Of a stretch of 64,000 nt of DNA, positions 10,913-24,410 are shown piece by piece. Below the pieces are notes generated by a model. It worked only from the letters and a program-made list of their open reading frames with translations, did no database searches and was not told where the DNA came from. Location of the stretch: the sequence record PP355768.1; one strand, given 5' to 3'. The position numbers were made by a program, and so were the translations under genes. Position 1 is the stretch's first letter. Each line of letters starts with the position of its first letter.

Positions 10913-10989
10913 TGGCAAACCCCAGGAGACTCGAACTCCTACTGCACGGTTTTGGAGACCGGCGTGCTGTCCAGTAACACTCGGGGAAT
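10913..10989 (-). tRNA. tRNA-Trp(CCA), atypical acceptor stem
   Basis: Cloverleaf, loop CT-CCA-AA, encoded CCA; U2:U71 and U3:U70 mismatches. Confidence 0.75.
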
Positions 10990-10993
10990 AGAA

Positions 10994-11185: not shown

Positions 11186-11202
11186 TTGCTTCTCCTATAG
11201 TT

Positions 11203-11378
11203 TGCCATCTCTGGCTGTTAAATGACGTCCTAACTATTATAGAGTCGAGCCCAGGCAGACGTCGGCACCCCGGACTACATAGGCTCTAGAACAGCAAATA
11301 ATTAGTATCGATAAAATGGCCTTACCGGCTCCCAGTTCCTTGTTTAATTCCCCGTAACGTCAGGGGACGGTCATTTTA
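11203..11378 (-). ncRNA. Candidate structured RNA
   Basis: No ORF; helices 11214-19/11290-95, 11224-29/11258-63, 11312-21/11369-78. Confidence 0.4.
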
Positions 11379-11385
11379 CCGAATT

Positions 11386-11461
11386 TGGAGCGACTAGGGG
11401 GAATCGAACCCCACTCAGTACCGCTTGGAAGGCGGACGCTGTAACCCGTACAGTTAGTCGC
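11386..11461 (-). tRNA. tRNA-Gly(TCC)
   Basis: Canonical cloverleaf, CCA end. Confidence 0.95.
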
Positions 11462-11599
11462 GGAATTATTTTATTACGCAAGTGCAGCCACCCGAGAATA
11501 TAGATCCGTAACACTTGTCGCACATAACGTCTTCTATTTTAAGAACTCTAAATTTCATAGGGGGTTATTACCTGTAGTAATATGCTTACCTTTTAGGGT

Positions 11600-11669
11600 T
11601 GCTGGCTTCCGGAATTGAACCGGAATTTAATGACAATGTAAACTTAATCACACTGTAACCATAACCAGC
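11600..11669 (-). pseudogene. Degenerate tRNA (intact acceptor and T arms; no CCA, no anticodon stem)
   Basis: GCTGGTT/AGCCAGC acceptor, TCCGG-TTCAATT-CCGGA T arm. Confidence 0.6.
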
Positions 11670-11674
11670 GAAAA

Positions 11675-11750
11675 TGGTGCCCCAAGTAGGAATCGAACCC
11701 ACGACCTACCGCTTACAAGGCGGTTGCTCTCCCGGCTGAGCTATTGAGGC
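11675..11750 (-). tRNA. tRNA-Thr(TGT)
   Basis: Canonical cloverleaf, CCA. Confidence 0.95.
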
Positions 11751-11755
11751 AAGAT

Positions 11756-11832
11756 TGGTCTCCCCTAAGTGATTTGAACACTTGACCTGACGCTCCCAAA
11801 GCGCCCGCTCTGCCAGACTGAGCTAAGGGGAA
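11756..11832 (-). tRNA. tRNA-Pro(TGG)
   Basis: Canonical cloverleaf, CCA. Confidence 0.95.
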
Positions 11833-11837
11833 ATATT

Positions 11838-11915
11838 TGGTACCCACTCCCGGACTCGAACCGGGAACCCTGAAGTCTTAAGCCTCATGCCTCTACCAGA
11901 TTGGACCAAGTGGGT
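11838..11915 (-). tRNA. tRNA-Leu(TAA), short variable loop
   Basis: Loop CT-TAA-GA, 5-nt variable loop, CCA. Confidence 0.85.
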
Positions 11916-11916
11916 G

Positions 11917-12066
11917 CTAATCGTTATCCAAGTAGGCTTCTATAGCCTCTAGGGCTTCCAGAGTAGAGATATTGAATCTCTCTTTAAGCACTACCACTAG
12001 AGTTTCCTGATTCCAGGAATCTACGGAATTAATGTAATTCTCGATGAAATTAGAGTAGCCGCCCAT
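11917..12066 (-). CDS. 49-aa hypothetical protein (not in ORF track)
   Basis: MGGYSNF...YLDND*; start overlaps the upstream stop (TAATG). Confidence 0.6.
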   Translation of the reverse strand: MGGYSNFIENYINSVDSWNQETLVVVLKERFNISTLEALEAIEAYLDND

Positions 12067-12404
12067 TATCGAATCTCCAGACCTTGGAAATACCGCGGGA
12101 ACGGAGAGCCCACTTCAAAGCTAATGCCCCAGTTGAGTTCCACCAGCTCTGACTTATCCAAAAGTAGATCATTGCCTTCAAAGATGTAGCCGTATACAGT
12201 TGGGAACATCGCTGCTAGATCTTCCATATTGGAGTAAGCATCATGCTCTTCACGGAATTGCTCAAACTCTTCAAAGAACTTCTCAAGGAAGAACTCCGGT
12301 ACAATGAACGTTACAACGTCAGTGCTATCATCAATACGATAGACCGTTGCCTGGAATAGGCCGACACCGACCAAGTTGATAGCAGGAGTAGTAAAGATAT
12401 CCAT
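12066..12404 (-). CDS. Acidic hypothetical protein
   Basis: 112-aa ORF. Confidence 0.75.
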   Translation of the reverse strand: MDIFTTPAINLVGVGLFQATVYRIDDSTDVVTFIVPEFFLEKFFEEFEQFREEHDAYSNMEDLAAMFPTVYGYIFEGNDLLLDKSELVELNWGISFEVGSPFPRYFQGLEIR

Positions 12405-12406
12405 TA

Positions 12407-12601
12407 TTAATATACCTTGATTAAAGTATTGTCGATGGTGTTCAGGAACTTAACTGCCGCATCTCTATTAGAGAATGTCTCCAGCACGATAATGTTGTTC
12501 TCAGGATCACCGTTACGCACTCGTATCTGGTACGATACAATCACTTCCCAGCGGAACCATAAAGCTCGTGGATTATATCGCATAAGAATTTTTTGATTCA
12601 T
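12407..12601 (-). CDS. Hypothetical protein
   Basis: 64-aa ORF behind a promoter. Confidence 0.7.
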   Translation of the reverse strand: MNQKILMRYNPRALWFRWEVIVSYQIRVRNGDPENNIIVLETFSNRDAAVKFLNTIDNTLIKVY

Positions 12602-12632
12602 TAGGTAAGCCCTCTCATTAATTTATATAAAT

Positions 12633-12661
12633 ATTATATTATAAATAAGAGCGTTTAGCAA
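12633..12661 (-). promoter_or_regulatory. Early promoter
   Basis: TTGCTA-17-TATAAT. Confidence 0.8.
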
Positions 12662-12692
12662 ATGAATTTTTCGAACTTTCGGGAAAATGCCA

Positions 12693-12904
12693 CCCTAAGT
12701 CAATGCCACTACTTGAGACGTTATAGGCAATCTATCTCAAGTTGTCTGCCCCATTGCTTTCAGTGATTTCTGCACGCAGAAATTCTTCTTGACTGGAGGA
12801 CTTTACCACGTCAAACGGCCGGAAATCAGTGGCTTATTTTATCCTGTCACCCATTACCTGCTTGTCTGAGTTTAATCAGAGAGCCTGTAACGGGCTACTT
12901 GGGA
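12693..12904 (-). ncRNA. Candidate ~210-nt multibranch RNA
   Basis: No ORF; closing helix plus several internal helices. Confidence 0.5.
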
Positions 12905-12906
12905 TT

Positions 12907-13015
12907 TGGAAGTATCAGTTGGATTCGAACCAACGCACCGGCTAACCTAGAGATCACCAGACGTTTCCAAGTCTGCTCACTAACGGCCAGCTGCTTTACC
13001 GTGAGCTTTAGGACT
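12907..13015 (-). ncRNA. tRNA-like RNA with helical extension replacing the anticodon loop, CCA end
   Basis: D arm GCT-CACGGTAA-AGC, T arm GTTGG-TTCGAAT-CCAAC, encoded CCA. Confidence 0.75.
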
Positions 13016-13048
13016 ATTCAGCTCCATAAGCTATTGATACTATTAATT

Positions 13049-13126
13049 TGGTGCAACCGGTTCGATTTGAACGAACGACCCCTGGACTTTCAAACCAGTG
13101 CTCTCACCTCGCTGAGCTACAGTTGC
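13049..13126 (-). tRNA. tRNA-Phe(GAA)
   Basis: Cloverleaf, U31:U39 mismatch, CCA. Confidence 0.9.
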
Positions 13127-13207
13127 GTAATTCGTGCCTGCTCCTTTGAATCAAGAAGTCCACCCCGGTCTTTGGGTCTTTGCAGTACATCACGCTGCTC
13201 TGATGTT

Positions 13208-13295
13208 TGGTGGAACTTGGGAGACTACGTGCTACTCCCCTCACAGACCGGGATTCCCCGCTATCTATGATGCTTAACCGATTAGCTGAAGTCCC
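13208..13295 (-). ncRNA. Anticodon-less tRNA mimic with alanine identity
   Basis: GGGACTT/AAGTTCC acceptor (G3:U70), A73, CCA, D arm, 11-nt T loop. Confidence 0.75.
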
Positions 13296-13301
13296 ATAAT
13301 G

Positions 13302-13377
13302 TGGTAGACCGCCCGGGACTCGAACCCGGAACCTATCGCTTAAAAGGCGAGTGCTCTAACCATTGAGCTAGCGATCT
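13302..13377 (-). tRNA. tRNA-Lys(TTT)
   Basis: Canonical cloverleaf, CCA. Confidence 0.95.
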
Positions 13378-13552
13378 ATGGATATGTTATTGTTACTTCC
13401 CATACATGAGCATAGCAGCTTTTCGATACTATATGGGTTTCCGCTTCTGTTAAAGCGGCTTCAAATGTATCATGTAACGTTGTACCTTCGAATTTAATAC
13501 TTGAATCTCCCGTTTGGGACTCTCTTGTTACAAACGCCTTATACTTAATCAT
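13376..13552 (-). CDS. 58-aa hypothetical protein
   Basis: Start refined to MIKYKAF (GAGG SD); the upstream part of the track ORF is tRNA-Cys. Confidence 0.7.
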   Translation of the reverse strand: MIKYKAFVTRESQTGDSSIKFEGTTLHDTFEAALTEAETHIVSKSCYAHVWEVTITYP

Positions 13553-13565
13553 AAGTACCTCGATT

Positions 13566-13639
13566 TGGAGCACCATCATGGATTTTAACCATGCTTCGAG
13601 GGTTTGCAAGCCTCTGCCTAGTCACTCGGCCAATGATGC
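13566..13639 (-). tRNA. tRNA-Cys(GCA)
   Basis: U73 discriminator, CCA; atypical T loop TTAAAAT; C31:C39 mismatch. Confidence 0.85.
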
Positions 13640-13646
13640 ATTGTTT

Positions 13647-13824
13647 AATTAGGGCGCACCGGAGTTCCACCGATTGCTAACGCTTCACTGCAACCTAAGT
13701 CGCTGTTCTTACCCTAATACTGTATTACTGACTAGGATTTTCACCTAGACGGAGTTAGCACCGTAGCGTGTAGCGGCATACCTCTCCAAACCGGGCCACA
13801 TCTTTCAATTTCGGTGGCAGTATT
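13647..13824 (-). ncRNA. Candidate two-domain RNA with T-loop-like hairpins
   Basis: AATACTG/CAGTATT and ATTAGGG/CCCTAAT closings; CTAGG-TGAAAAT-CCTAG. Confidence 0.5.
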
Positions 13825-13867
13825 CCTACGCGTGCCTGAGTTAATTAAATAACCCTTTCAGTAAAAT

Positions 13868-13945
13868 TGGCGGGAGAGGTGAGATTCGAACTCACTGTCA
13901 TTCGCTTAACAGGCGACCGCCTATACCACTTACTGCTTCTCTCCC
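13868..13945 (-). tRNA. tRNA-Asn(GTT)
   Basis: Cloverleaf, CCA. Confidence 0.95.
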
Positions 13946-13955
13946 AAATAGATTT

Positions 13956-14047
13956 AACAACCAAAGCGCTTTCGTCCATTTAAGCTACAAGGCCTTTATG
14001 CCGCCTGTTGCGTACGCGGGATTCGAACCCGGATCTCTTTGATTGTC
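13956..14047 (-). ncRNA. Circularly permuted tRNA-like RNA (YrlA-like topology)
   Basis: T arm precedes D arm; ends pair as an 11-bp stem in the anticodon-stem position. Confidence 0.75.
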
Positions 14048-14052
14048 AAAAT

Positions 14053-14140
14053 TGGTGGGGGAAGATGGAGTCGAACCACCCGAGCCGCAATGGCAACGAT
14101 TTTACAGACCGCTCTGCTACCACTTACAGAATATTCCCCC
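14053..14140 (-). tRNA. tRNA-Tyr(GTA)
   Basis: Long variable arm, CCA. Confidence 0.95.
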
Positions 14141-14178
14141 GTATTTGAAGAAGCTCTCGTGAGAACCTCTTCAAATAC
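14141..14178. repeat. 38-nt hairpin element, copy 1
   Basis: GTATTTGAAGA...CTCTCGTGAG...TCTTCAAATAC; second copy at 20116-20153. Confidence 0.7.
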
Positions 14179-14278
14179 CTCGTCGAAACGAGATATTTGC
14201 TAACTTATTGTGACTAGGGCTGACCCTTGTGTCTGAGGATACCTCTAGACGGTCATATCTCTTAGCCCAGAGAGAGTT

Positions 14279-14355
14279 TGGCGCGGCTAACGGGATTCGA
14301 ACCCGTGGCTCCGACGTGACAGGCCGGTATGTTGACCGCTGAACACCATAGCCGC
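14279..14355 (-). tRNA. tRNA-Asp(GTC)
   Basis: Canonical cloverleaf, CCA. Confidence 0.95.
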
Positions 14356-14363
14356 TTAATTTG

Positions 14364-14477
14364 TTATTCCGGTTCGTACTCCATCAGATCGTCTGACTCA
14401 CATGTCGGACACTCCCAATGGCATTCACTTAACTCACCGCAATCGGAACAAATGTATAACTTAACTTCATCTTCCAT
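14364..14477 (-). CDS. 37-aa zinc-ribbon mini-protein (not in ORF track)
   Basis: MEDEVKLYICSDCGELSECHWECPTCESDDLMEYEPE*; GAGGA SD; first gene after a promoter. Confidence 0.7.
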   Translation of the reverse strand: MEDEVKLYICSDCGELSECHWECPTCESDDLMEYEPE

Positions 14478-14507
14478 TTGCTTTTCCTCTTTCGTTTCAA
14501 TATAAAT

Positions 14508-14536
14508 ATTATACTAAATTTCAGGGTACTAGGCAA
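14508..14536 (-). promoter_or_regulatory. Early promoter
   Basis: TTGCCT-17-TATAAT. Confidence 0.75.
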
Positions 14537-14548
14537 ATGAATTTTTCA

Positions 14549-14764
14549 TTAATCGTCGTCTTCGTCCCATGAAAGGGAGTGCATGAAGATCGGTAGAACT
14601 GTAGGTTCTACGTCAAGCGACGGGTAGAAATAAGTTTTACCTTGAGACAGGTCAATGAATGTAGGAGTTCTACCCTCCTGCATGTGTTCATCAACCTTGT
14701 CTAGGGCGTCGTTTAACAGTTCGAAGCAGTCAGTATTCGCTCCGCAAACAACGATAAAATCCAT
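14549..14764 (-). CDS. Acidic hypothetical protein
   Basis: 71 aa, coupled to the upstream gene. Confidence 0.7.
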   Translation of the reverse strand: MDFIVVCGANTDCFELLNDALDKVDEHMQEGRTPTFIDLSQGKTYFYPSLDVEPTVLPIFMHSLSWDEDDD

Positions 14765-15141
14765 TAACGACCCCCGTTCGGGAAACCGGAGGCAAGCAGG
14801 AAGCGAACAACGTCTTCCAGCGACGGGCCTTCGCCATCTTCTTCTTCCAGATGGAAAGGCAGAATAGCGTACTGCATCTCAGCTGGCGCTACCGGGGTGA
14901 AGGTAGGCTCTGCGGGAGCTTCCGCCATGAACACTGCGGTTCCGTCAACCAGACGATCGATCGCTTCACAGACTTCTAGCTGTTCTTCGATCTTGGCCTC
15001 GCGTTCGCGCATCAGGGACAGCATCTCAGTGCGATACTCCTCAATACGACGGTCTAGAGACTCGATGTTGTTGGACAGGTTGTCCTGAACAATCATCAGG
15101 CGGACTACAGCAGAATTTCCATTAGTAGGACGTGTGTACAT
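14764..15141 (-). CDS. Coiled-coil hypothetical protein
   Basis: 125 aa, GAGGA SD. Confidence 0.75.
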   Translation of the reverse strand: MYTRPTNGNSAVVRLMIVQDNLSNNIESLDRRIEEYRTEMLSLMREREAKIEEQLEVCEAIDRLVDGTAVFMAEAPAEPTFTPVAPAEMQYAILPFHLEEEDGEGPSLEDVVRFLLASGFPNGGR

Positions 15142-15161
15142 AGTATTTCCTCAATTGATTA

Positions 15162-15434
15162 TTAGATAAAGTCGCCGGTAGAGACTACCAGTTTAATGCT
15201 TTTACGGAAGATTTCGTTCATACCGTCGTGAACCATTACTGTCCCGACCAGTTTTGGAAGGTAGACTTCCACATCAATATTACCGTATGGCATGGCGTGC
15301 TCGTCAGTAAGTTTAGTCCATAACTCCGGCTGAAGCTCGCAGTTATAGAACACCATCCATTCATGATCTCCGTCCCATCCGGCCCAATCAACCACCAGTG
15401 CAGATTCAATACCAGTTGCAGTAATCTTTTCCAT
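15162..15434 (-). CDS. Hypothetical protein
   Basis: 90 aa, GAGGAG SD. Confidence 0.75.
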   Translation of the reverse strand: MEKITATGIESALVVDWAGWDGDHEWMVFYNCELQPELWTKLTDEHAMPYGNIDVEVYLPKLVGTVMVHDGMNEIFRKSIKLVVSTGDFI

Positions 15435-15465
15435 TTGCTAACTCCTCTCATTAATTTATGTAACT

Positions 15466-15494
15466 ATTATACAGTAAATAAGAGCGTTTAGCAA
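15466..15494 (-). promoter_or_regulatory. Early promoter
   Basis: TTGCTA-17-TATAAT. Confidence 0.8.
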
Positions 15495-15511
15495 ATAAAT
15501 TTTTGAATTAT

Positions 15512-15915
15512 CCGCTCCGAAGAGCGGTAATCCAGGCTTGCAGCTGTTAATTGCACTTGGTTTGAAGTTGTCTAAGACATTAACTGAAGGTTGATAGCCT
15601 CCCCGTTTCTGCAATTAACAAATCCCAACTTGTTTTTAACGTGGATGCTTGGGTATTAAAGGAACCACTACGTTACACACTAGGGCCGATTGGCCGGAAC
15701 CTAGTCACTAACGCTAGGGCAATGACCGTCTAAGTCCCTAGATTCGCCATTTATACTCCTGGACGGCATGGAGTCGATTCCCTAGACTTTTACTCAGCAT
15801 TGCGCTAAAACCTGTAAAGGTAAGGATGGGGTATTCTTACGAATCTGGGATCATCCCCATCAGAAATTACAGCTTCTCGGACGTTTGACGGCCCTGACCG
15901 AAGTCTCACTGTAAA
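15512..15915 (-). ncRNA. Candidate ~400-nt structured RNA
   Basis: No credible ORF; 11-bp helix 15545-55/15610-20, several 6-7-bp helices, terminal C(UUCG)G hairpin. Confidence 0.55.
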
Positions 15916-15916
15916 T

Positions 15917-15992
15917 TGGTACTTGCTGCTGGTTTCGAACCAGCTACCCTCGCCGTGTAAAGACGATGCTCTCCCGATTGAGCTAAGCAAGT
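15917..15992 (-). tRNA. tRNA-Val(TAC)
   Basis: Canonical cloverleaf, CCA. Confidence 0.95.
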
Positions 15993-15995
15993 ATT

Positions 15996-16072
15996 TGGTG
16001 GTCAATAGTGGACTCGAACCACTGTAGTCTCACGTATGAAGCGAGTGCATAAACCATCTCTGCCAACTGACC
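15996..16072 (-). tRNA. tRNA with CAT anticodon (Met or Ile2)
   Basis: Loop TT-CAT-AC, G1:C72, CCA. Confidence 0.9.
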
Positions 16073-16079
16073 CAAAGAA

Positions 16080-16226
16080 TTTGCCTCAAGAATCTTACGC
16101 CACTATTCTTCTCCTACCTATACCTGATTTGCCCACAAAGTAAATTTGTCTAGGCTTAACAGGTAAGTACTATACTACGTACCATCGCTGGAGGATATTC
16201 CGATGAAATATCCTATAGGGGGCAAA
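16080..16226 (-). ncRNA. Candidate ~150-nt multibranch RNA
   Basis: Closing TTTGCC/GGCAAA; AGGATATT/AATATCCT and TACCTG/CAGGTA helices. Confidence 0.5.
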
Positions 16227-16229
16227 AAT

Positions 16230-16305
16230 TGGTACTCCGAACTGGACTCGAACCAGTGACCTAACGATTATCGGTCGTTTGCTCTACCAACTGAGCTATC
16301 GAAGC
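16230..16305 (-). tRNA. tRNA-Ile(GAT)
   Basis: Canonical cloverleaf, CCA. Confidence 0.95.
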
Positions 16306-16306
16306 A

Positions 16307-16465
16307 TTATTGTTCCTGCTGGCGGACGCAGATTTCCTCGTCCGGGTGTATTTTAGCGATCCTAGCGTCTTCCTCGGCTTCATTGTAGGTGTCGTGAAAA
16401 GCCGGTGCCAAGAATACAATCTCTTTTGTGTGGGTATTAATTAGCATACCTTGATAGCGAGTCAT
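16307..16465 (-). CDS. 52-aa hypothetical protein (not in ORF track)
   Basis: MTRYQGML...RQQEQ*; GAGGT SD. Confidence 0.65.
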   Translation of the reverse strand: MTRYQGMLINTHTKEIVFLAPAFHDTYNEAEEDARIAKIHPDEEICVRQQEQ

Positions 16466-16472
16466 AGTTACC

Positions 16473-16667
16473 TCAACGTTTACCATTACGAGGTGCTCCG
16501 GGACGTTTAGCAGCTTCTGCCATTCGTTTCTTGATTTTAGCGATATTCTCTGGTGTTTGTTCTGACTTGCGTAAGCCTGTCACGTTACACCAGCTATCAC
16601 CTTCCCAAGAAGTGATTAGCATTACTCCAGTACCTAGTACTCGTTCTGTGAAAGAGATTTTCATCAT
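16473..16667 (-). CDS. Hypothetical protein
   Basis: 64 aa, AGGAG SD. Confidence 0.7.
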   Translation of the reverse strand: MMKISFTERVLGTGVMLITSWEGDSWCNVTGLRKSEQTPENIAKIKKRMAEAAKRPGAPRNGKR

Positions 16668-16680
16668 CTTCTCCTAGAAT

Positions 16681-16757
16681 TGGATGCTCCGGCAAGATTC
16701 GAACTTGCGATCTCCAGCTTATGAGACTGGCGAGGACGGCCTCTCCTCTACGGTGCA
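16681..16757 (-). tRNA. tRNA with CAT anticodon (Met-type)
   Basis: Loop CT-CAT-AA, U1:A72, A4:A69 mismatch, CCA. Confidence 0.9.
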
Positions 16758-16759
16758 AT

Positions 16760-16835
16760 TGGCAGGGGCAACAAGAATCGAACTTGTGACCTAAGGCTTC
16801 AGAGACCTCCGCTCTACCTACTGAGCTATACCCCA
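16760..16835 (-). tRNA. tRNA-Gln(CTG)
   Basis: Cloverleaf, G73, CCA. Confidence 0.95.
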
Positions 16836-16845
16836 ATTATGCGCA

Positions 16846-16958
16846 CTCTGCTGAGTACAACGTTGTGTCTAGGGCCAGAACATAAATGCTTGCATTTATG
16901 GGAAGCGGCTAGAAGAGGGATGTGACCCGGAGGGCTAACCTCGTCACTCTCAGCAGAG
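16846..16958 (-). ncRNA. Candidate three-way-junction RNA
   Basis: Perfect 10-bp closing stem CTCTGCTGAG/CTCAGCAGAG and two internal arms. Confidence 0.55.
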
Positions 16959-16964
16959 ATTTTA

Positions 16965-17039
16965 TGGTACACCATCGAGGAATCGAACCTCAACCATAGA
17001 GTTCGTAGCTCTATATTCTATCCATTAAACTAATGGTGC
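16965..17039 (-). tRNA. tRNA-Arg(ACG)
   Basis: Canonical cloverleaf, CCA. Confidence 0.95.
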
Positions 17040-17046
17040 AGTAATC

Positions 17047-17123
17047 TGGAGGGATATCTTGGATTCGAACCAAGATAGACTCGATCCACAATCGAGGTCA
17101 TTATCCAGTTATGATAATATCCC
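17047..17123 (-). tRNA. tRNA-His(GTG) lacking G-1:C73
   Basis: Loop TT-GTG-GA; U73; T at position -1. Confidence 0.85.
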
Positions 17124-17276
17124 AAATTTGAGTACCATCGAGGGCTGATCAGACCTCCACAAATAAAATGCACATCGCACACCGTATTTGGTTAGACCGC
17201 GTACTGGGTATAGGACACTCAGTGTACTACGTAGTCCCAGCGTACGACTCCTATAATATCAATGATACTCAAATTT
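17124..17276 (-). ncRNA. Candidate ~150-nt structured RNA
   Basis: 11-bp closing stem AAATTTGAGTA/TACTCAAATTT with nested arms. Confidence 0.5.
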
Positions 17277-17376
17277 GGTGGCCCTAAGAAACTCTTCCCA
17301 CTCACAACTAGTTGATTACTTCTGGATTTTCGCCCAGAAAATTCTCTAGAAAGGGGCAACCGTTACTCGTCGGGCC
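17276..17376 (-). ncRNA. CCA-ended 101-nt RNA with an acceptor-like stem
   Basis: GGCCC(GA)/(TA)GGGCC-A-CCA; TTCTGG-GCGAAAAT-CCAGAA hairpin. Confidence 0.6.
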
Positions 17377-17382
17377 ATTGTT

Positions 17383-17468
17383 TGGCGGAAAGCGAAGGAC
17401 TTGAACCTTCATGCCCTTGCGGACTCATCATTAGCAGTGATGCGTGGCTACCGTTTCACCAGCTTTCC
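17383..17468 (-). tRNA. tRNA-Ser(GCT)
   Basis: Long variable arm, G73, CCA. Confidence 0.95.
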
Positions 17469-17475
17469 AGTTGTT

Positions 17476-17560
17476 TGGCGGAGAATAAAGGAATCGAACC
17501 CTCACCGTTTCCGATGGCGACTGATTTCAAGTCAGCTTGCTCCCATGAGCACTACTCTCC
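17476..17560 (-). tRNA. tRNA-Ser(TGA)
   Basis: Long variable arm, G73, CCA. Confidence 0.95.
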
Positions 17561-17573
17561 AGTTAATATAAGA

Positions 17574-17667
17574 TGATGCCTCGACTACACCGGGCTGTTT
17601 AAGCCCCGCCAGGATTCGAACCTGTTAAAACAGTGTTTCCACCAGCCGTAGGTTTCACTGAACATCA
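17574..17667 (-). ncRNA. T-arm-containing RNA with paired ends
   Basis: TGATGTT/GGCATCA closing stem; GAAA hairpin; CAGG-TTCGAAT-CCTG; GC hairpin. Confidence 0.6.
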
Positions 17668-17671
17668 AATT

Positions 17672-17758
17672 TGGTAGGGATGGAGGGGGTCGAACCCACA
17701 CGGATATTTCACCACTAGAACCTAAATCTAGCGCGGCTGCCAATTTCGCCACATCCCC
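17672..17758 (-). tRNA. tRNA-Leu(TAG)
   Basis: Long variable arm, CCA. Confidence 0.95.
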
Positions 17759-17765
17759 ATTTGTT

Positions 17766-17844
17766 TGGTGGAGGATAACGGATTTGAACCGTTCTGATTC
17801 CCGCATTGCAAGTGCGGTGTCCACTCCCAGCAGACCCATCCCCC
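17766..17844 (-). tRNA. tRNA-Ala(TGC)
   Basis: G3:U70, A73, CCA. Confidence 0.95.
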
Positions 17845-17849
17845 AATAA

Positions 17850-18059
17850 TTTGTTAAGGCAATTAATCCGGTGCGCGTAATACCCTGAGCAATTAGCCAT
17901 GCAAGGATACCCGCTCTTCACAAATACGATACACTCTACGCTTACCAGGCGTTTCGGAGAGCCACTCCGCTATTCTTGCAAACCCTCAGTTCAATTACCG
18001 AGCAAGCTGCAAGCGTGTTTTTTGGTTCCGGCTCTGTATCAGATTAATTCCTTAACAAA
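17850..18059 (-). ncRNA. Candidate ~210-nt rod-like RNA starting at a promoter
   Basis: ~17-bp closing helix 17851-68/18042-58 with further nested helices. Confidence 0.55.
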
Positions 18060-18069
18060 CTATATAAAT

Positions 18070-18098
18070 ATTATATCAATTTGTTAAGCATTTAGCAA
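18070..18098 (-). promoter_or_regulatory. Early promoter
   Basis: TTGCTA-17-TATAAT. Confidence 0.8.
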
Positions 18099-18117
18099 CT
18101 GAATTTTTCAGTAAATT

Positions 18118-18194
18118 TGGTACTCCCGACGGGGTTCGAACCCGTGTTCCCACTGTGAAAGAGTGGTGTCCTAACCAGCTTAGACGACAGGAGC
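18118..18194 (-). tRNA. tRNA-Glu(TTC)
   Basis: Canonical cloverleaf, CCA. Confidence 0.95.
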
Positions 18195-18204
18195 ATTTTA
18201 AATT

Positions 18205-18280
18205 TGGCAAGGGAAGGAGGAGTTGAACCTACCGATCTCGGAGTCAAAGGCCGATGCCGTAACCACTTGGCTATTCCCTT
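18205..18280 (-). tRNA. tRNA-Gln(TTG)
   Basis: Cloverleaf, C31:U39 mismatch, CCA. Confidence 0.95.
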
Positions 18281-18291
18281 TCAATATAAAT

Positions 18292-18320
18292 ATTATCTCA
18301 AATTCTAAAGCATTTAGCAA
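18292..18320 (-). promoter_or_regulatory. Early promoter
   Basis: TTGCTA-17-GATAAT. Confidence 0.7.
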
Positions 18321-18339
18321 TTGAATTTTTCAAGTATTT

Positions 18340-18367
18340 TGGTAGTGACCCGGCAACGCAGGTCACT
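18340..18367 (-). ncRNA. CCA-ended acceptor microhelix
   Basis: AGTGACC-loop-GGTCACT-A-CCA. Confidence 0.4.
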
Positions 18368-18374
18368 ATGCAAA

Positions 18375-18869
18375 CTACTCGCCGTGGTCTACACGAATGA
18401 GCGGACAAAGTTTGTCCTTCTTGTAGATTCGCATCTTTTGGTAGATGTTACCGAAGCGAAGCTCTTCATCGCGAGCATTATACTCTTTCTGTGCTCTTTC
18501 AAAGGATTTACTAGCGTTCCATTCCTGGATCCGATCCCCTATCTTAGCGCAGGCCCAGCCGATCCCAGCTATCGCCAGCAGAATCGCTACTATCGTAGAT
18601 AGTCCTGCTAGACTTAACCCTACAAGCATGTACCAGGGAGTAATTCCCAGCTCAAAGGTGAGGCCCAAGAACGTAGATAAGATACTTCCCATCCCCAAGG
18701 AGAAGAGTACAGCAATAGCAGTTACGCCAATCTGTAGCAGGAAATACCACACTGAGTGCCAAAATAGGCTACACAAGGTGACTCTGTTGTCGTTCAGCCG
18801 ATAGGTGAAAGACGCGGAAGAGAAATTAAGCCACTTGTAGAAAAAACCTTTACGTTTAATATTCAGCAT
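18375..18869 (-). CDS. Membrane protein
   Basis: Two or three TM segments, 164 aa. Confidence 0.8.
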   Translation of the reverse strand: MLNIKRKGFFYKWLNFSSASFTYRLNDNRVTLCSLFWHSVWYFLLQIGVTAIAVLFSLGMGSILSTFLGLTFELGITPWYMLVGLSLAGLSTIVAILLAIAGIGWACAKIGDRIQEWNASKSFERAQKEYNARDEELRFGNIYQKMRIYKKDKLCPLIRVDHGE

Positions 18870-18879
18870 ATTTAGCCTA

Positions 18880-19089
18880 TTACTTGAGTTGATTGATTAG
18901 GAAAACTTGTAGCGCGATAATGAATGCGGCATAGGAGTCAGAGCCTTTACCACCTTCGTTCTCATTAACTTCTTTTAGTAGGGCTTCAAAAGCTGCTTTG
19001 TGACGCTCATAGTGCCCTCTGACTGTCGGGCCAGCATCCTCTAACATGCCTAAAAGCATATAGTACTGGGTTTGTAATTGGGCGTCCAT
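18880..19089 (-). CDS. Hypothetical protein
   Basis: TAATG coupling, GGAGG SD. Confidence 0.75.
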   Translation of the reverse strand: MDAQLQTQYYMLLGMLEDAGPTVRGHYERHKAAFEALLKEVNENEGGKGSDSYAAFIIALQVFLINQLK

Positions 19090-19286
19090 TAGTCCTCCCA
19101 CACGATTTTAATCGAGAGAAGACGATTTACAGGAATGACCAGCATAGTCTCAGACCGTTTATTAAGAATTTCCAGGATATCCCCATCACGATGGAGCAGA
19201 CGTTTAGGACTGATATCTGTTACTGTGGACTCTAGGACGATACCACTGTCATCCACGAAGGATACGATTGCGTTTTTAGTAGACAT
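19089..19286 (-). CDS. Hypothetical protein
   Basis: 65 aa, AGGAG SD. Confidence 0.75.
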   Translation of the reverse strand: MSTKNAIVSFVDDSGIVLESTVTDISPKRLLHRDGDILEILNKRSETMLVIPVNRLLSIKIVWED

Positions 19287-19307
19287 TTTAGTCTCCTGTT
19301 ATGAAAT

Positions 19308-19385
19308 TGGTGGCTCCCGGAGGATTCGAACCTGCCTACCTTCCGCTTATGAGGCGGGTGCTCATACCCAATGAGCTTGAGAACC
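19308..19385 (-). tRNA. tRNA with CAT anticodon (Ile2 or Met)
   Basis: Loop CT-CAT-AA, G1:C72, A73, CCA. Confidence 0.9.
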
Positions 19386-19415
19386 TGAGAAGGGCTATTT
19401 CTAGCCCTTAGTTAT

Positions 19416-19709
19416 TTATACTGCTGCTTCATCTTCCGGGGTGCCTTCCACCGGAGGTTCTTCAGTAGGGGTATCCCCTACCGGAGTGTCTTCAGTTGGA
19501 GCATCTTCAACCGGCTCAGGATCTTTCACGAAGCCTGCTTCTTCATCGGAGATCACATACAGATCCTGAATATCCTCTGTATTGATCATACGAGCTACGC
19601 TACCATCTTTATAGAAGACGGATTTAGTGCCCTCGTTGCGAGCCATGTTCGCATCGATAATCAGCTCAGTGAGAACCCCTTTCTTTAAATATTCAATTTT
19701 GTAAGCCAT
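19416..19709 (-). CDS. Hypothetical protein with acidic Pro/Thr-rich repeat tail
   Basis: EDAPTEDTPVGDTPTEEPP tail; GAGGA SD. Confidence 0.8.
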   Translation of the reverse strand: MAYKIEYLKKGVLTELIIDANMARNEGTKSVFYKDGSVARMINTEDIQDLYVISDEEAGFVKDPEPVEDAPTEDTPVGDTPTEEPPVEGTPEDEAAV

Positions 19710-19743
19710 TTTATCCTCTACTTTCTCTTTGATTTAAAGAACT

Positions 19744-19772
19744 ATTATACAAAATTTCTGACAAAATTGCAA
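19744..19772 (-). promoter_or_regulatory. Early promoter
   Basis: TTGCAA-17-TATAAT. Confidence 0.8.
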
Positions 19773-19860
19773 GAAAAATTTTGTAGAATCAATCTCAGTC
19801 TGCGCCCTGCGGGCTTTTTACCGCTGCCCACTGAATATTACGTGTGGGCAGCGATTAAAG

Positions 19861-19936
19861 TGGTACTCCCTACAGGATTCGAACCTGTGACCCACGGTTT
19901 AGAAGACCGTTGCTCTATCCTCTGAGCTAAGGAAGC
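19861..19936 (-). tRNA. tRNA-Arg(TCT)
   Basis: Canonical cloverleaf, CCA. Confidence 0.95.
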
Positions 19937-19937
19937 A

Positions 19938-20102
19938 TTAATAAAGTTTAAGTGTTTTGACAACCAGATCATGAACCTGTTCAGAATACCGGCCAACGCT
20001 CTTATGCAGCGACTCCTTAAATTCTAGAGTACGTCTAGCGATTAGCTGCTTCTGTTCAGGTGTCAGATTCGGTGGTGGACGTTCATAAGGTGGTGTACGC
20101 AT
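19938..20102 (-). CDS. 54-aa hypothetical protein (not in ORF track)
   Basis: MRTPPYERPPP...TLKLY*; AGGAG SD. Confidence 0.65.
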   Translation of the reverse strand: MRTPPYERPPPNLTPEQKQLIARRTLEFKESLHKSVGRYSEQVHDLVVKTLKLY

Positions 20103-20115
20103 GTTAGTCTCCTAA

Positions 20116-20153
20116 GTATCTTTAAGAACTCTCGTGAAAGCTCTTAAAGATAC
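20116..20153. repeat. 38-nt hairpin element, copy 2
   Basis: GTATCTTTAAGA...CTCTCGTGAA...TCTTAAAGATAC. Confidence 0.7.
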
Positions 20154-21397
20154 CGCCAGTAGGTAGGGGCCTTCCCCTGTTTAAGCTATGCGGCCCTTCT
20201 GTCAGACGTATCTTCCAGTTATAGTCAAGGTGACTAATATACCTTGCCAGATCCCGGCCAACGGATATCCGTCGGCTAATGCGGTCTAGGCGAGGGCACA
20301 CTCCAAACAGGGGCACTTCTAGCCTGTGTAAGGGTGCTATAAATAGTGGTTATGCTTTCGCTCGGGGTGACTCCGGTCATGACTCCATTGTCACATGCTT
20401 ACACAGGGTATACGAGCTTCCGCGGAGCTGTATACTCAACCGTGTCCCACTTAGGTCTCGGAGCCACCGTTTGTACGAACGGCTATCCGAATACTCTTTC
20501 CCACTTAGAATCAGGCGAGATCCCACCTCGCCAAAGTTCATACGATCATCATGCCGTATTTAAGGACTAGCTTTGGCACTTCTGGAGAGCCATCCTCCAC
20601 GCGGTCTGTTAAAATCACACCTCCGAATTTTCGATGTGAAGTTTGGCTATCTCTAGCCTTCCAGCGTATGGTCGCTTCGCACCTGCCACTCTTACGTTCA
20701 AATCGGTTTAGGTGGTGGCAACCCTCCGAAGTTCCGAGTTTGGTTGAGGCCGTCAGGTTTCCTCGTGGTTTAGCTGTTTCGTTCCCGCGAGTCTCCCAAG
20801 TCTTTCCCTGGGAGGGGAGGAGGTACTCCAGCAGCGAGTGGTTCGCCAATAGAACCATCAGTTATCTAGCTCTTTCCGACCGCAGGATTCGAACCTGCAC
20901 TTTCCGCATCTGGGGATAGCTCCCCGCGTGCAGAAGTCTACCAATTAACTTAGGACGGCAGTGTTGCTACATAAGTGATTTCGACACCCCACTATGGTGG
21001 CAATAACCAGCACCAGACGCTATACACATGTCTCCAATTTGCAGCCTAGGCAGGTCAGTGTGGGAGCTATACGAGTTTCTCAGGCTCAGTTCCCCACCTC
21101 TCCGGCAGGCCACGCACCATGCTTCATTCTGGTCGAACAAGTTAAAGTGAGATTCCACCATTTTCTATAAATCAGGAGAAGAGTTTACGAGACTCCGGGA
21201 CAGCTCCCGAGTTTTACAAGAGATCTCTAACCTACGCCCGTCCAATACGCTCCCTGGCCGGTATCCGGACTGGATGCACGAACTTTGTCAGGTGATCACT
21301 CTTAACTCACCGATTCTATTCAACGAATCTTAATGCTCGACGAGTCTTACATTAAAACAAGTTCAGCGTAATCGGCCCGCTGTTCTCTCTAATTTAT
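20154..21397 (-). ncRNA. Candidate giant structured RNA (~1.2-1.3 kb, possibly more than one RNA)
   Basis: No SD-led ORF; over 20 hand-found helices; embedded tRNA-like domain; dedicated promoter. Confidence 0.65.
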
Positions 21398-21403
21398 GAA
21401 ACT

Positions 21404-21432
21404 ATTATATCAGCTTTTTAAGCATTAGGCAA
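21404..21432 (-). promoter_or_regulatory. Promoter driving the giant non-coding region
   Basis: TTGCCT-17-TATAAT, overlapping the hydrolase stop. Confidence 0.8.
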
Positions 21433-21879
21433 CTGAGATTTTAATTTATAGAACACATGGTTGCCAATTTTACTTGTTCTTTTGAAGTCCTTGTCTTTTG
21501 TCCAGTAAGGTTTAGTATCTTTACTGTGAAAGTACAAAGCTCCCTTCGTCGGATCTACTGGAAGATCCATATAGTAAACTAGTCTAGCTATCTCTTTAGC
21601 TTGTTTCCACTCTTCGTCTTTACGATCGAGTTTATGTTTCTTTTTACCAACCCAGCTGAACTGCCCTGGTTGATAGACTACTTTACAATATGTGGACGGG
21701 AATTTTCCATAGTTAACACGATTTTTCGTTACTTGTGCAACTGCGGTCATTCCTTTAACTCCTTCCCCTCTAGCTTCAAAGTACACATTTTTAGCTATGC
21801 ACTCTATCTCATGCGCATCAATCTTTGCCTGCGCATGGAAGCTAGTGAGGATGGAGATCATTAGAATGGCTGCTTTCAT
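21418..21879 (-). CDS. Cell-wall hydrolase, SleB/Hydrolase_2 family
   Basis: CIAKNVYFEARGE, VVYQPGQFSW and IGNHVFY motifs. Confidence 0.9.
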   Translation of the reverse strand: MKAAILMISILTSFHAQAKIDAHEIECIAKNVYFEARGEGVKGMTAVAQVTKNRVNYGKFPSTYCKVVYQPGQFSWVGKKKHKLDRKDEEWKQAKEIARLVYYMDLPVDPTKGALYFHSKDTKPYWTKDKDFKRTSKIGNHVFYKLKSQLPNA

Positions 21880-21943
21880 TATTTCTCCTTTACTCTTTGA
21901 TTCAAGAATAATAGTATATCAAGAAATCAGCCATTTAGTCAAA

Positions 21944-22948
21944 TCAAATTTTCAATTTCGATTCGATAGTTTTAATACAGTACGCTTCTACCAGGGCGTC
22001 AAACACCGGATCATGTTTCGACGGGTAGACCCCCTCAGGAATCAGGTTGTAACGCTCGATTACGTCATGTGCATAGATTTCAGCACAGCGTACCAATGCT
22101 TTCCAATCCCCTCCTAGAGCCTCAAAGTAGTCACGCGGGTTGCGGGCGCTAGAAATATCCCAGAACTTCCACGGAACAATCGCAGGATCAGACGGAGAAA
22201 AGACGTTAGCCTGAGCTGCCACTGTTTCGTAGATGGACATGTCGAACTGCGGGCCATTACCATAGTGGCGCAGAGAACGAGTGTCGATATCTTGCTCATC
22301 GATAATGCCTTCGATTACCTGTTTTGCCTCTACGAACGGGCAGATCAGATCCATGAACGTATGCTTGGATACCGGTGACTCATGAGTCGGGTTGCAAACC
22401 AGAACAGTAGACTCGCCGTCTTTAGCGTTCAGAGCTTCAATAATGGACAGCGACGGAGCACTACCCGCACGAGCCTCATTCATCCAGAATGCAATAGTTC
22501 CGGCGGACACCTTAGCACCGAGGGCCAACTGCTGGGCAACGTTAGGAATGCCTAGAACGATATAAGGATCTAGCGATAGATCTTTCATCAGTACGAAAGC
22601 GAAAGACGGCATAGCGATAAAGGTGCTCTTGCAGTCTCCCGGAGTTCCCAGAGATTCGATATCGCAAACAGAGATCCAGCGGTCTTGTAAGTTTTGCATA
22701 TTGTTTCCTTTGTTATTAAAGTTGCTTCTAGATGTGCTACCACATTTAGAAGCCACCTCCGGTGGTGGCTTAGTCATATCTTCGGACACATCCCAGTTTT
22801 CTTCCATAGACGGCCAGTCAGCCGCCCAATCTTCGAGTTCTTCGTAGCACGAATCCATCAGTTCCCGGGAGTTGACCCTAGAGTAATCTAGGGCCGACTT
22901 ATGTGTCGCTGCACGATTGAAATCGTTTTTAGCTACAAAATTTCGCAT
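21944..22948 (-). CDS. DEDDh 3'-5' exonuclease-like protein with N-terminal extension
   Basis: CDIES, GPQFDM and HDPVFDA motifs; internal SD-led ATG at 22699. Confidence 0.7.
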   Translation of the reverse strand: MRNFVAKNDFNRAATHKSALDYSRVNSRELMDSCYEELEDWAADWPSMEENWDVSEDMTKPPPEVASKCGSTSRSNFNNKGNNMQNLQDRWISVCDIESLGTPGDCKSTFIAMPSFAFVLMKDLSLDPYIVLGIPNVAQQLALGAKVSAGTIAFWMNEARAGSAPSLSIIEALNAKDGESTVLVCNPTHESPVSKHTFMDLICPFVEAKQVIEGIIDEQDIDTRSLRHYGNGPQFDMSIYETVAAQANVFSPSDPAIVPWKFWDISSARNPRDYFEALGGDWKALVRCAEIYAHDVIERYNLIPEGVYPSKHDPVFDALVEAYCIKTIESKLKI

Positions 22949-23358
22949 TATGCCTTCTTAGCGGGTTTGCGTTTTTGAGTACGAGGCTTGTTTGCCTTGC
23001 CCGTAAATTTAATACCTACGCCGTAGCACAGGGCGCGAACATTCTCACGGCTGTACTCGCAGCCAAAGATATTCGGCTTGACGCTACCGAAACGGCCCTG
23101 GGTCTTGCGCAGGACTTCTTTGGTGTCCGCCCTATCCGGCGTACTCCAGCCAACGATCTTCGAGACGTAGCCAGAGGTAGAACCCTTAGTTACCGGCTTT
23201 TTACGACGCGGGGCCGGTTTGCTTACAGCTGATGCTGCTTGAGTATCAGCCGGATGTTTACGCAGATGACGCTCCAGACGTGCTTTGCGATTCGCTTCAG
23301 TTTTGGGAAAAGTTGCAACTTTGGTTTCTACTGCTTTTTTAGAGGTCTGCTTAGCCAT
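22948..23358 (-). CDS. Basic hypothetical protein
   Basis: 136 aa, Lys/Arg-rich, AAGGA SD. Confidence 0.8.
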   Translation of the reverse strand: MAKQTSKKAVETKVATFPKTEANRKARLERHLRKHPADTQAASAVSKPAPRRKKPVTKGSTSGYVSKIVGWSTPDRADTKEVLRKTQGRFGSVKPNIFGCEYSRENVRALCYGVGIKFTGKANKPRTQKRKPAKKA

Positions 23359-23408
23359 GATTTATTTCCTTTGTTTTGTTTTGATTGGTTTCGTTAATTT
23401 ATGAATCT

Positions 23409-23437
23409 ATTATACGTTAATTTTTAGCGTTTAGCAA
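23409..23437 (-). promoter_or_regulatory. Early promoter
   Basis: TTGCTA-17-TATAAT. Confidence 0.8.
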
Positions 23438-23767
23438 CTGCGTTTTTTCATTTTCATCTACAAGCTCATCGAAGATGATGAACTCGTACCTGTTACCGCC
23501 CGATGTGCTTCGCTTGCTCTTCCGAGCTGATGTACTGGTACCCGCCTTTGTTGTATGCCGGTGCTGTACAGAGTTTCTTTCGCTCAATTTCTTTAAGAGC
23601 GGCTCGTTCTCTTTCAGCCATCTCAGGATCCAGGATTTCCCGTGCCTGCGGTCTTGGTGGTAGACGCGTAGAGGGTTCCCCGATTTTAACGCTTCCAGAA
23701 ACGCGGCGTAGAGATCGAGCTGGTACTGAGGTACGTTTGGGAACAAATCCCTCAAATCTGGTGCCAT
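23417..23767 (-). CDS. Small P-loop-like protein (overlapping frame)
   Basis: RRHGKS and FIIFDE motifs. Confidence 0.55.
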   Translation of the reverse strand: MAPDLRDLFPNVPQYQLDLYAAFLEALKSGNPLRVYHQDRRHGKSWILRWLKENEPLLKKLSERNSVQHRHTTKAGTSTSARKSKRSTSGGNRYEFIIFDELVDENEKTQLLNAKN

Positions 23768-23783
23768 TATAATTCATCTCCAC
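23493..23783 (-). CDS. Hypothetical protein (overlapping frame)
   Basis: APAYNKGGYQY motif; natural amino-acid composition. Confidence 0.6.
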   Translation of the reverse strand: MEMNYNGTRFEGFVPKRTSVPARSLRRVSGSVKIGEPSTRLPPRPQAREILDPEMAERERAALKEIERKKLCTAPAYNKGGYQYISSEEQAKHIGR

Positions 23784-23928
23784 CCCTCAGAGCTTTCCAC
23801 TCCGCTTCAAAGATTTGGGCTTCCATACGTGCGATTCGCAGTTTCATTACTACTCGATCCACACCCGGCTCCATCAGGAGCACCTCATATTTCATTTCGC
23901 TAACTAAGCGGCGTAAATTCTCTAACAT
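23767..23928 (-). CDS. 53-aa hypothetical protein (not in ORF track)
   Basis: MLENLRRL...GGDEL*; start overlaps the rnh stop. Confidence 0.6.
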   Translation of the reverse strand: MLENLRRLVSEMKYEVLLMEPGVDRVVMKLRIARMEAQIFEAEWKALRGGDEL

Positions 23929-24410
23929 CACATATCCTCCATTTCTAGCTCGGTCATGCGAACATTTAGCAGATTATCTGCGGCCTCATTACCTTCTACA
24001 CCGGAGTGGCCCTTAACCTTAACGAAAGTTGGGATCTCATTGTGGTTTAGACGATACTTCTTGAGTTCGTCGATAATCCACTTCCACTGGTCTAAGTTCA
24101 GAGGTGTATCACCATCTGCCTTCTTCCAGCCTTTACGTTCCCAGCCCCAAACCCAGGATTCACAACCATTCTTAACGTAGGTCGAGTCCAGATAGATTGT
24201 CATTGGTCGGCCAGGGTTTTTGTTAGACCATAGCAGAGCCTCTAGGACTGCTTGAAGCTCCATCTCATTATTAGTTGTGTTGCGTTTGGGAGCAGACTTG
24301 GTGCCGATTTGCTCTTCGCTGGAGTTGTAAACTACCATAGCCCAAGCACCAACGTTGTCTACCCCACGGGTATTACCGCGGCAACCACCATCAGTATAAA
24401 CATGAAACAT
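23928..24410 (-). CDS. rnh: Ribonuclease H
   Basis: YTDGGC, TNNEMEL, DSTY and KVKGHSG...NEAAD motifs. Confidence 0.95.
   Translation of the reverse strand: MFHVYTDGGCRGNTRGVDNVGAWAMVVYNSSEEQIGTKSAPKRNTTNNEMELQAVLEALLWSNKNPGRPMTIYLDSTYVKNGCESWVWGWERKGWKKADGDTPLNLDQWKWIIDELKKYRLNHNEIPTFVKVKGHSGVEGNEAADNLLNVRMTELEMEDM

Follow-up and report, generated by a model that had tools for sequence, protein, structure and literature searches.

A tRNA-Like Domain without an Anticodon Loop Is Embedded in an RNAX Homologue of a T5-Like Klebsiella Phage

What does a cloverleaf that has neither an anticodon loop nor a CCA end do in the middle of a long phage RNA? The question is raised by a 64,000-nucleotide (nt) stretch of sequence record PP355768.1 (the window, below), in which an 85-nt segment of the minus strand, positions 20875–20959, had been described from its letters as a tRNA-like domain built into a giant RNA (the original prediction). 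Between positions 20300 and 21500 the window shares 100% identity with Klebsiella phage vB_Kpn_AM_K6 and 96–99% with many Sugarlandvirus genomes; judged by this identity, it is Sugarlandvirus DNA, i.e., DNA of a T5-like Klebsiella phage of the family Demerecviridae. The domain is located ca. 940 nt upstream of tRNA-Arg(UCU), the first member of a cluster of 25 tRNA genes on the minus strand (10913–19936; ARAGORN and the Rfam tRNA model). Inspection of the sequence showed that the letters and coordinates of the domain had been given exactly, with G1 at 20959 and position 72 at 20875, and that, as predicted, its D arm, T arm, and variable loop are canonical, its anticodon loop is replaced, and CCA is absent.

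The acceptor stem GCCGUCC/GGUCGGA is formed by positions 20953–20959 and 20875–20881 (here and below, features of the RNA are on the minus strand), and consists of five Watson–Crick pairs plus G1.A72 and U5.U68. It is followed by the D arm, AGUU-AAUUGGUA-GACU (20935–20950). At the place of the anticodon arm (20904–20933), a stem CUGCA/UGCGG encloses CGC-GGGGA-GCUA-UCCCC-AGA, a 20-nt insert folded as a hairpin of its own (GGGGA-GCUA-UCCCC, 20912–20925). The variable loop AAAGU (20899–20903) and the T arm GCAGG-UUCGAAU-CCUGC (20882–20898) complete the cloverleaf. The minimum-free-energy (MFE) fold of the isolated 85 nt was exactly this structure, at −32.5 kcal/mol (z = −2.1).

A homologue search anchored on the neighboring endolysin protein returned only two near-identical phages; since this was too narrow, conserved DNA motifs were used, and 27 distinct versions were gathered from a phage collection, IMG/VR, and metagenomes. 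When 17 distinct homologues were aligned (plain MAFFT, unbiased) and scored on the cloverleaf and the helix flanking it, 89% of cells were paired and 12 pairs were changed on both sides, compared with 6.4 ± 1.4 in shuffled controls (0 of 500 shuffles reached 12) and 1–4 when partners were slid. A covariance-model alignment of 19 sequences gave 14 compensatory pairs in the cloverleaf and the enclosing helix; slid controls across both alignments gave 1–5. The compensatory changes occur in all four cloverleaf stems and in at least three genera (Tequintavirus, Epseptimavirus, and Sugarlandvirus). The T stem shows UA/CG and AU/GC alternations, the D stems of the window and T5 types differ at all four pairs, and acceptor pairs 6:67 and 3:70 are each either C-G or U-A. 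Acceptor pair 5:68 is U.U in most homologues, A-U in T5, and U-A in BF23, and mismatches at 1:72 and 5:68 are conserved. Invariant nucleotides of the elbow are U8, A14, G18, G19, A21, G53, U54, U55, C56, A58, and C61. An alternative TGCAC/GTGCA pairing, named in advance as a fold that would count against the cloverleaf, is impossible in T5-type and S132-type homologues, and is thus without comparative support. The conservation and covariation that had been proposed as a check on the prediction were therefore found, and the acceptor/T/D elbow has been kept under purifying selection.

The window copy was not called by ARAGORN, and the Rfam tRNA model (RF00005, gathering score 29 bits) did not match it even at E-values up to 10, solely because a 20-nt hairpin insert replaces the 7-nt anticodon loop. 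In the near-identical phages Roth37 and K7PH164C4, the homologous 85-nt feature is publicly annotated as “tRNA-OTHER” and “trna-Undet(NNN)”, respectively. In related phages, the domain is shorter, at ca. 72 nt. The same Rfam model gave 39.6 bits for the homologous domain of BF23, 33.0 for S132, and 29.3 for EscoHU1, and sub-threshold scores of 26.6 bits for B01 and 26.4 bits for phiR2-01. The shorter version is labeled “tRNA-Sec” by some annotators. We rejected the S132-type copy as a genuine tRNA-Sec(UCA), since the loop closed by its stem has 5 nt and pairing fails in the canonical register. The domain has the cloverleaf with the D- and T-loop nucleotides of a tRNA, and lacks the 7-nt loop with U33 and an anticodon, CCA or free ends, and, in the window copy, a tRNA-level score. 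Because of the anticodon loop, the CCA, and the score, it is not a canonical tRNA. A covariance model of the domain found nine genuine tRNAs of the window phage, at 18–40 bits, and the domain is thus related to tRNA by sequence as well as by shape.

The original prediction had also placed the domain in a recurring family with two elements lying on the minus strand between tRNA genes as stand-alone genes. One of them (13208–13295) has a 7-bp acceptor stem, a closed hairpin for an anticodon arm (z = −2.8), and an encoded ACCA; the other (12907–13040; 134 nt) has a canonical T arm, a weak Rfam tRNA match (21 bits), and an encoded UCCA. The shared architecture, i.e., a closed anticodon arm, stands; the kinship does not, since the model that finds nine real tRNAs misses both elements, and a common family was rejected on this basis. 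The record of T5 lists seven smaller stable RNAs, two of them as “tRNA-like stable RNA” and a third as “putative tRNA-like RNA”. RNA1, RNA2, and RNA3 of T5 are like the 12907 and 13208 elements in design, being cloverleaf-like members of the tRNA cluster with other structure in the place of the anticodon region; by blastn, they had no match anywhere in the window.

The anticodon arm is the variable part of the domain. At least six forms of it occur, each specific to a lineage; a 7-nt loop is absent from all of them, and the arm is swapped between lineages in a cassette-like manner; the loops of homologues comprise 4–6 nt, as against the 20-nt insert of the window. T5, BF23, and Sugarlandvirus B01 share a covarying stem of 3–4 bp (GCC/GGU versus GGC/GCC) with a conserved GUAACU loop, while S132, EK80, and phiR2-01 each have a further closed stem of their own. 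The inner hairpin of the window type is supported by a compensatory change: at metagenome locus L056, it reads GGAGA-UUAUA-UCUCC, so that GGGGA/UCCCC has become GGAGA/UCUCC. The inserted hairpin (20912–20925) resembles another hairpin of the same RNA, CGGGA-GCUG-UCCCG at 21190–21203, which is conserved in the 5′ domain of the RNA (CCGGA/UCCGG in EK80), and may be an internal duplication of that module.

The domain is carried on a helix. Its 5′ strand (20966–20979) and 3′ strand (20857–20870) form 12 bp (20977–20966 with 20870–20859), extended to 14 bp by the covarying pairs 20979–20857 and 20978–20858. The predicted MFE and centroid folds of the full RNA both contain the helix. All ten counted pairs were formed in every sequence and four of the ten covary; conserved C.C and G.G mismatches are also present. 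Six nt on the 5′ side and 4 nt on the 3′ side separate the helix from the acceptor stem. The 5′ junction strand, AACACU (20960–20965), places a U at −1 and is invariant in 17 distinct homologues; phiR2-01 has AAACAU here. The 3′ junction strand, AAGA (20871–20874), occupies the place of the discriminator and CCA and is invariant in all homologues, none of which has CCA; in each, AAGA leads into the helix. Directly 3′ of the helix is a hairpin, GGUUC-UAUUGGC-GAACC (20840–20856), with compensatory changes at pairs 20855–20841 and 20852–20844, and in the consensus fold a GUGG/CCAC pairing closes off the helix, the domain, and this covarying hairpin.

What, then, is the RNA that contains the domain? 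In the tRNA-region record of phage BF23 (AJ604530), the homologous domain lies within a misc_RNA feature, rnaX, annotated as “RNAX, stable RNA with unknown functions”, 784 nt long, with promoter P16-17 at one end and tRNA-Arg at the other. For T5, the same group annotated an rnaX of 719 nt at the corresponding position (AY543070). In both phages, the tRNA-Arg gene begins one base past the annotated 3′ end of RNAX. A blastn comparison of the window with T5 RNAX gave 73% identity over 146 nt (E = 7e-18) and 90% over 41 nt, and the window RNA contains the conserved RNAX 5′ motif AACAGCGRGCCGAUUACGCUGA. A scan predicted a σ70 promoter at 21404–21432 (TTGCCT, 17-nt spacer, TG-TATAAT), which aligns with the annotated P16-17 of BF23 and T5. 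At the other end, a hairpin (20116–20153) that is a fully paired stem in the folds is 90% identical to the 3′ end of T5 RNAX; in T5 and BF23, this hairpin is directly upstream of tRNA-Arg. Judged by position and sequence, the RNA that bears the domain thus belongs to RNAX of the T5/BF23 type. It is a structured non-coding RNA of ca. 1278 nt (ca. 20113–21390), supported by alignment, covariation, blastn, and RNA contigs, with the domain ca. 430 nt from its 5′ end.

Fourteen full-length versions of RNAX, 635–1320 nt in length, were aligned, and consist of invariant blocks between lineage-specific modules. RNAalifold assigned the alignment an energy of −60, compared with −0.9 ± 1.0 for column shuffles, and a consensus of 99 pairs, 29 of them changed on both sides (1.1 ± 1.4, at most 5, in column-shuffled controls). 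The region is not coding. The open reading frames (ORFs) that tile RNAX (106, 54, 64, and 64 amino acids (aa)) were rejected as genes, given frame-breaking indels and cassette swaps among Sugarlandviruses, and the absence of a PHROG match, which extended to the ORFs of 54–106 aa that some pipelines place in the region; several annotators leave a gap of 1–1.6 kb at this position. No Rfam family for RNAX or the domain was found in the whole window at gathering scores or in 19900–24000 at E-values up to 10, and a search of the literature on RNAX and T5 non-coding RNAs yielded no paper describing RNAX and no published structure or function for it.

Other parts of RNAX deserve mention. A module of ca. 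118 nt (20645–20762) exists in two unrelated versions, and the version of EK80 and B01 takes its place in the DNA of relatives; further modules are likewise exchanged between lineages as cassettes. Two blocks are invariant in 14 of 14 versions, GGAGUCAUGACC (20378–20389), which contains the palindrome GUCAUGAC, and AGUCACCUUGACU..AACUGGA (20222–20240), which T5 has in two copies. The GUCAUGAC palindrome was considered as a candidate dimerization site; in the RNAalifold consensus it pairs within the molecule, with the invariant AGUCACCUUGACU block, a predicted pairing in which neither block varies.

Expression was assessed from public RNA data, in which this sequence is represented by assembled contigs that carry no strand or end information; these were compared with positions 18600–23400. 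Three RNA libraries (X5, X6, and X7) contained contigs of 624–1168 nt at a depth of 10–43, which together cover 20213–21388. X7 has a single contig of 1133 nt (20213–21377); X5 has a single contig of 1168 nt (20218–21381), unbroken relative to the window over 20763–21381, and X6 has three pieces, one of which corresponds to 20763–21388. The contigs start at 21377–21388, 2–13 nt from the predicted start of RNAX, and in all three libraries they run continuously across both borders of the domain. The endolysin and exonuclease genes (21498–22141) had a depth of 0, and other flanks 0–8.5. The 3′ ends of the contigs (20213–20218) lie in a motif that does not vary, and could result from breaks in the assembly. 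The pattern is consistent with an abundant long RNA that includes the domain. Homology to rnaX, covariation of the RNA, and the long contigs from RNA libraries thus bear out the original claim that the tRNA-like domain is embedded in a giant RNA. The EK80/B01-type cassette at 20645–20762 was also present in the RNA, in the X5 contig and in X6 (the matches to the window skip 118 and 122 letters there). In X5, the bin containing the domain (20854–21014) had a summed depth of 16228, versus ca. 30 for the remainder of RNAX, and at least four X5 contigs continue past the domain into a T5/BF23-type flank (loose end at 20995). The spike may stem from a T5-type RNAX that co-occurs and has a very stable sub-fragment, or from tRNA sequence of other organisms.

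The reading that we prefer, and hold to be somewhat better than evenly probable, is that the domain is a retained mimic of the tRNA elbow, a tRNA-derived structural domain of RNAX, which would itself be a phage RNA of the GOLLD/ROOL kind. Host RNA polymerase would transcribe RNAX from the strong σ70 promoter that heads the tRNA-Arg unit. The 12–14-bp helix would open, via the AACACU and AAGA strands, into the “top half” of a tRNA, i.e., the acceptor stem, D arm, and T arm. The domain would remain covalently part of RNAX and present an L-shaped elbow as its functional surface, with the anticodon arm serving as a closed, variable spacer hairpin. A partner that binds tRNA bodies would recognize the elbow; candidates are RNase P, enzymes that modify the T or D loop, the ribosome, and another part or copy of RNAX. 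Such a mimic could neither decode nor be aminoacylated.

Several observations weigh against a retained mimic. In HildyBeyeler-type phages (L040:13323–13403 and L042:7457–7537), the tRNA body is replaced by an unrelated 47-nt hairpin, while the helix, both junction strands (AACACU and AAGA), and the first pairs of the acceptor stem are retained, and a metagenome contig (L062) has no D arm; RNAX can thus do without the elbow. The sequence is compatible with RNase P (U at −1, G at +1, and an intact acceptor/T stack). The RNA evidence, which resolves neither strands nor ends, demonstrates the presence of RNA, not its absence, and because reads from a precursor would bridge a cut, the contigs are compatible with partial or even efficient processing.

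The last two points lead to the main alternative, in which the domain is a processing handle, a role that had been proposed at the outset along with that of an elbow docking module. RNase P would cut on the 5′ side of G1, and the 3′ side would be trimmed by RNase E, RNase Z, or exonucleases, splitting RNAX into a 5′ part, an 85-nt tRNA-like RNA, and a 3′ part, possibly joined by the helix; the release of mascRNA from MALAT1 and the tRNAs in the GOLLD linker are parallels. Bacterial RNase P recognizes the acceptor/T-arm stack, the T loop, G at +1, and U at −1, and each of these is present here, the U at −1 being conserved. Moreover, since tRNA-Arg of T5 and BF23 starts one base after RNAX, an RNase P cut at the 5′ end of tRNA-Arg would presumably define the 3′ end of RNAX. 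The X5 spike over the domain could mean a much more stable sub-fragment, but it could also come from the contigs with a T5-type flank or from tRNA sequence of other organisms. The 3′ flank, however, is the invariant AAGA, neither CCA nor a free trailer, the acceptor mismatches at 1:72 and 5:68 are conserved, and a 12–14-bp helix so close to the acceptor stem would be expected to hinder RNase P by its geometry. The contigs of three libraries continue over both predicted cut sites; these unbroken contigs, the invariant junction strands, and the enclosing helix together favor a retained module over an RNase P/Z handle, which we regard as possible but, on balance, unlikely.

An abundant tRNA body without a cleavable anticodon loop might also act as a decoy or sponge that binds anticodon nucleases or tRNA-directed defense proteins, thereby shielding host or phage tRNAs. 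Counter-defense by tRNAs of the T5 family is documented: a T5 tRNA neutralizes PARIS (PMC11464382), and T5 tRNA-Tyr rescues retron Eco7 toxicity, according to a citation in PMC10644984. The tRNA body of the domain is kept and the anticodon loop never is, RNAX is deeper than the flanking genes in the RNA libraries, and the lineage-specific swapping of anticodon arms could be the pattern of an arms race. Yet the known anticodon nucleases depend to a large extent on the very loop that is absent here, some phages do without the tRNA body altogether, and a decoy role would not account for so close an integration into a large, conserved RNA; a decoy is distinctly unlikely. That the domain is a functionless, decaying tRNA pseudogene at the edge of the 25-gene cluster, picked up by tRNA finders, is less probable still, to the point of being hardly credible. 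It adjoins the cluster, has no anticodon loop or CCA, has two acceptor mismatches, and its D arm is deleted in L062 and its body replaced in L040 and L042. Decay would not, however, leave compensatory changes in four stems over at least three genera, invariant tertiary nucleotides and junctions, an inner hairpin that covaries even in its window-specific form, and a host RNA that is itself expressed and covarying.

The gene that follows RNAX in all T5-like phages examined is tRNA-Arg(UCU) (19861–19936, minus strand; ARAGORN and Rfam), which in the window has a visible CCA terminus; the ARAGORN tRNA spans of the window extend 3 nt beyond the Rfam spans. Two genes upstream of RNAX, a 334-aa protein is encoded on the minus strand (21944–22948). 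It is labeled “3′ exoribonuclease” or “exonuclease” in relatives, and has a sub-threshold Pfam match to the Rv2179c-like 3′-5′ exoribonuclease domain (18.6 bits versus a cut-off of 27). Within the tRNA cluster, no Gly is found among the 25 called tRNAs. Positions 11389–11461 of the minus strand, which end in UCCA and have CUUCCAA as a 7-nt loop, probably are tRNA-Gly(UCC); this segment was missed by ARAGORN and by the Rfam tRNA model at gathering score, and scored 29 bits with the tRNA-Sec model. The annotation of PP355768.1 beneath RNAX consists of “sleB” only. The record comprises 261 kb, versus 109–114 kb in every related Sugarlandvirus genome, and may be a concatenated or mixed assembly.

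The RNA gene was already known from GenBank annotation; what is new is a well-supported tRNA mimic embedded in a larger RNA, in a tractable phage family. T5 and BF23 are classical model phages of E. coli, and RNAX is also present in hundreds of sequenced relatives used in phage therapy and biocontrol. Many annotation pipelines fill RNAX with “hypothetical proteins” or odd tRNA calls, including “tRNA-Sec”, and its recognition as a conserved, expressed, structured RNA of 0.6–1.3 kb with a tRNA mimic corrects such annotations. RNAX also provides a genetically tractable system in which to study a question posed by GOLLD and ROOL, namely the reason why giant phage RNAs are located next to tRNA islands and linked with tRNAs. 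At its most far-reaching, and in our view improbably, RNAX might be a previously unrecognized class of giant ornate RNA of the T5 family, comparable to GOLLD and ROOL and assembled into a higher-order particle. Such a particle would display a built-in elbow mimic to capture or interfere with a tRNA-handling machine of the host (RNase P, the ribosome, or a defense nuclease), with the exchangeable cassettes tuning the interaction.

The window RNA shares with RNAX of T5 and BF23 its P16-17-type promoter, its site before tRNA-Arg(UCU), conserved sequence blocks, the helix with the domain that it carries, and the 3′ hairpin. It differs in length (ca. 1278 nt versus 719 and 784 nt), because of extra and swapped modules, in its anticodon arm, which is a long hairpin and not a short stem with a GUAACU loop, and in a 54-aa ORF (19938–20102) that intervenes before tRNA-Arg. 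Among more distant systems, tmRNA and MALAT1/mascRNA also have tRNA mimicry inside a larger transcript, and mascRNA exemplifies a processing handle. In contrast to both, the RNAX domain has no CCA or alanine-identity context and is phage-borne, whereas tmRNA is bacterial-chromosomal and mascRNA eukaryotic; ARAGORN found no tmRNA. YrlA, a bacterial Y RNA-like RNA, has a tRNA-like module with T and D arms and no anticodon on the stem of a longer non-coding RNA, and the RNAX domain is likewise an anticodon-less T/D-arm element on a longer stem. The Rfam YrlA model had no match in the RNAX region at E-values up to 10, and its sole weak match in the window (26.7 bits; gathering score 69) was on real tRNAs; no search for an rsr (Ro60) gene was made. 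Covariance models of GOLLD and ROOL gave no match in 19900–24000 (E-values up to 10) or in the window (gathering scores), and sequences and helices are unrelated. GOLLD and ROOL are nevertheless like RNAX in being phage-encoded, located beside tRNA islands, hundreds of nt long, extensively structured with covariation, and without a known protein partner. GOLLD, moreover, sometimes has tRNAs in its linker, where RNAX has an insert that is a non-decoding mimic and not a functional tRNA; assembly of RNAX into homo-oligomeric cages would be a further, conjectural parallel. Among the systems compared, GOLLD is the one that RNAX resembles most.

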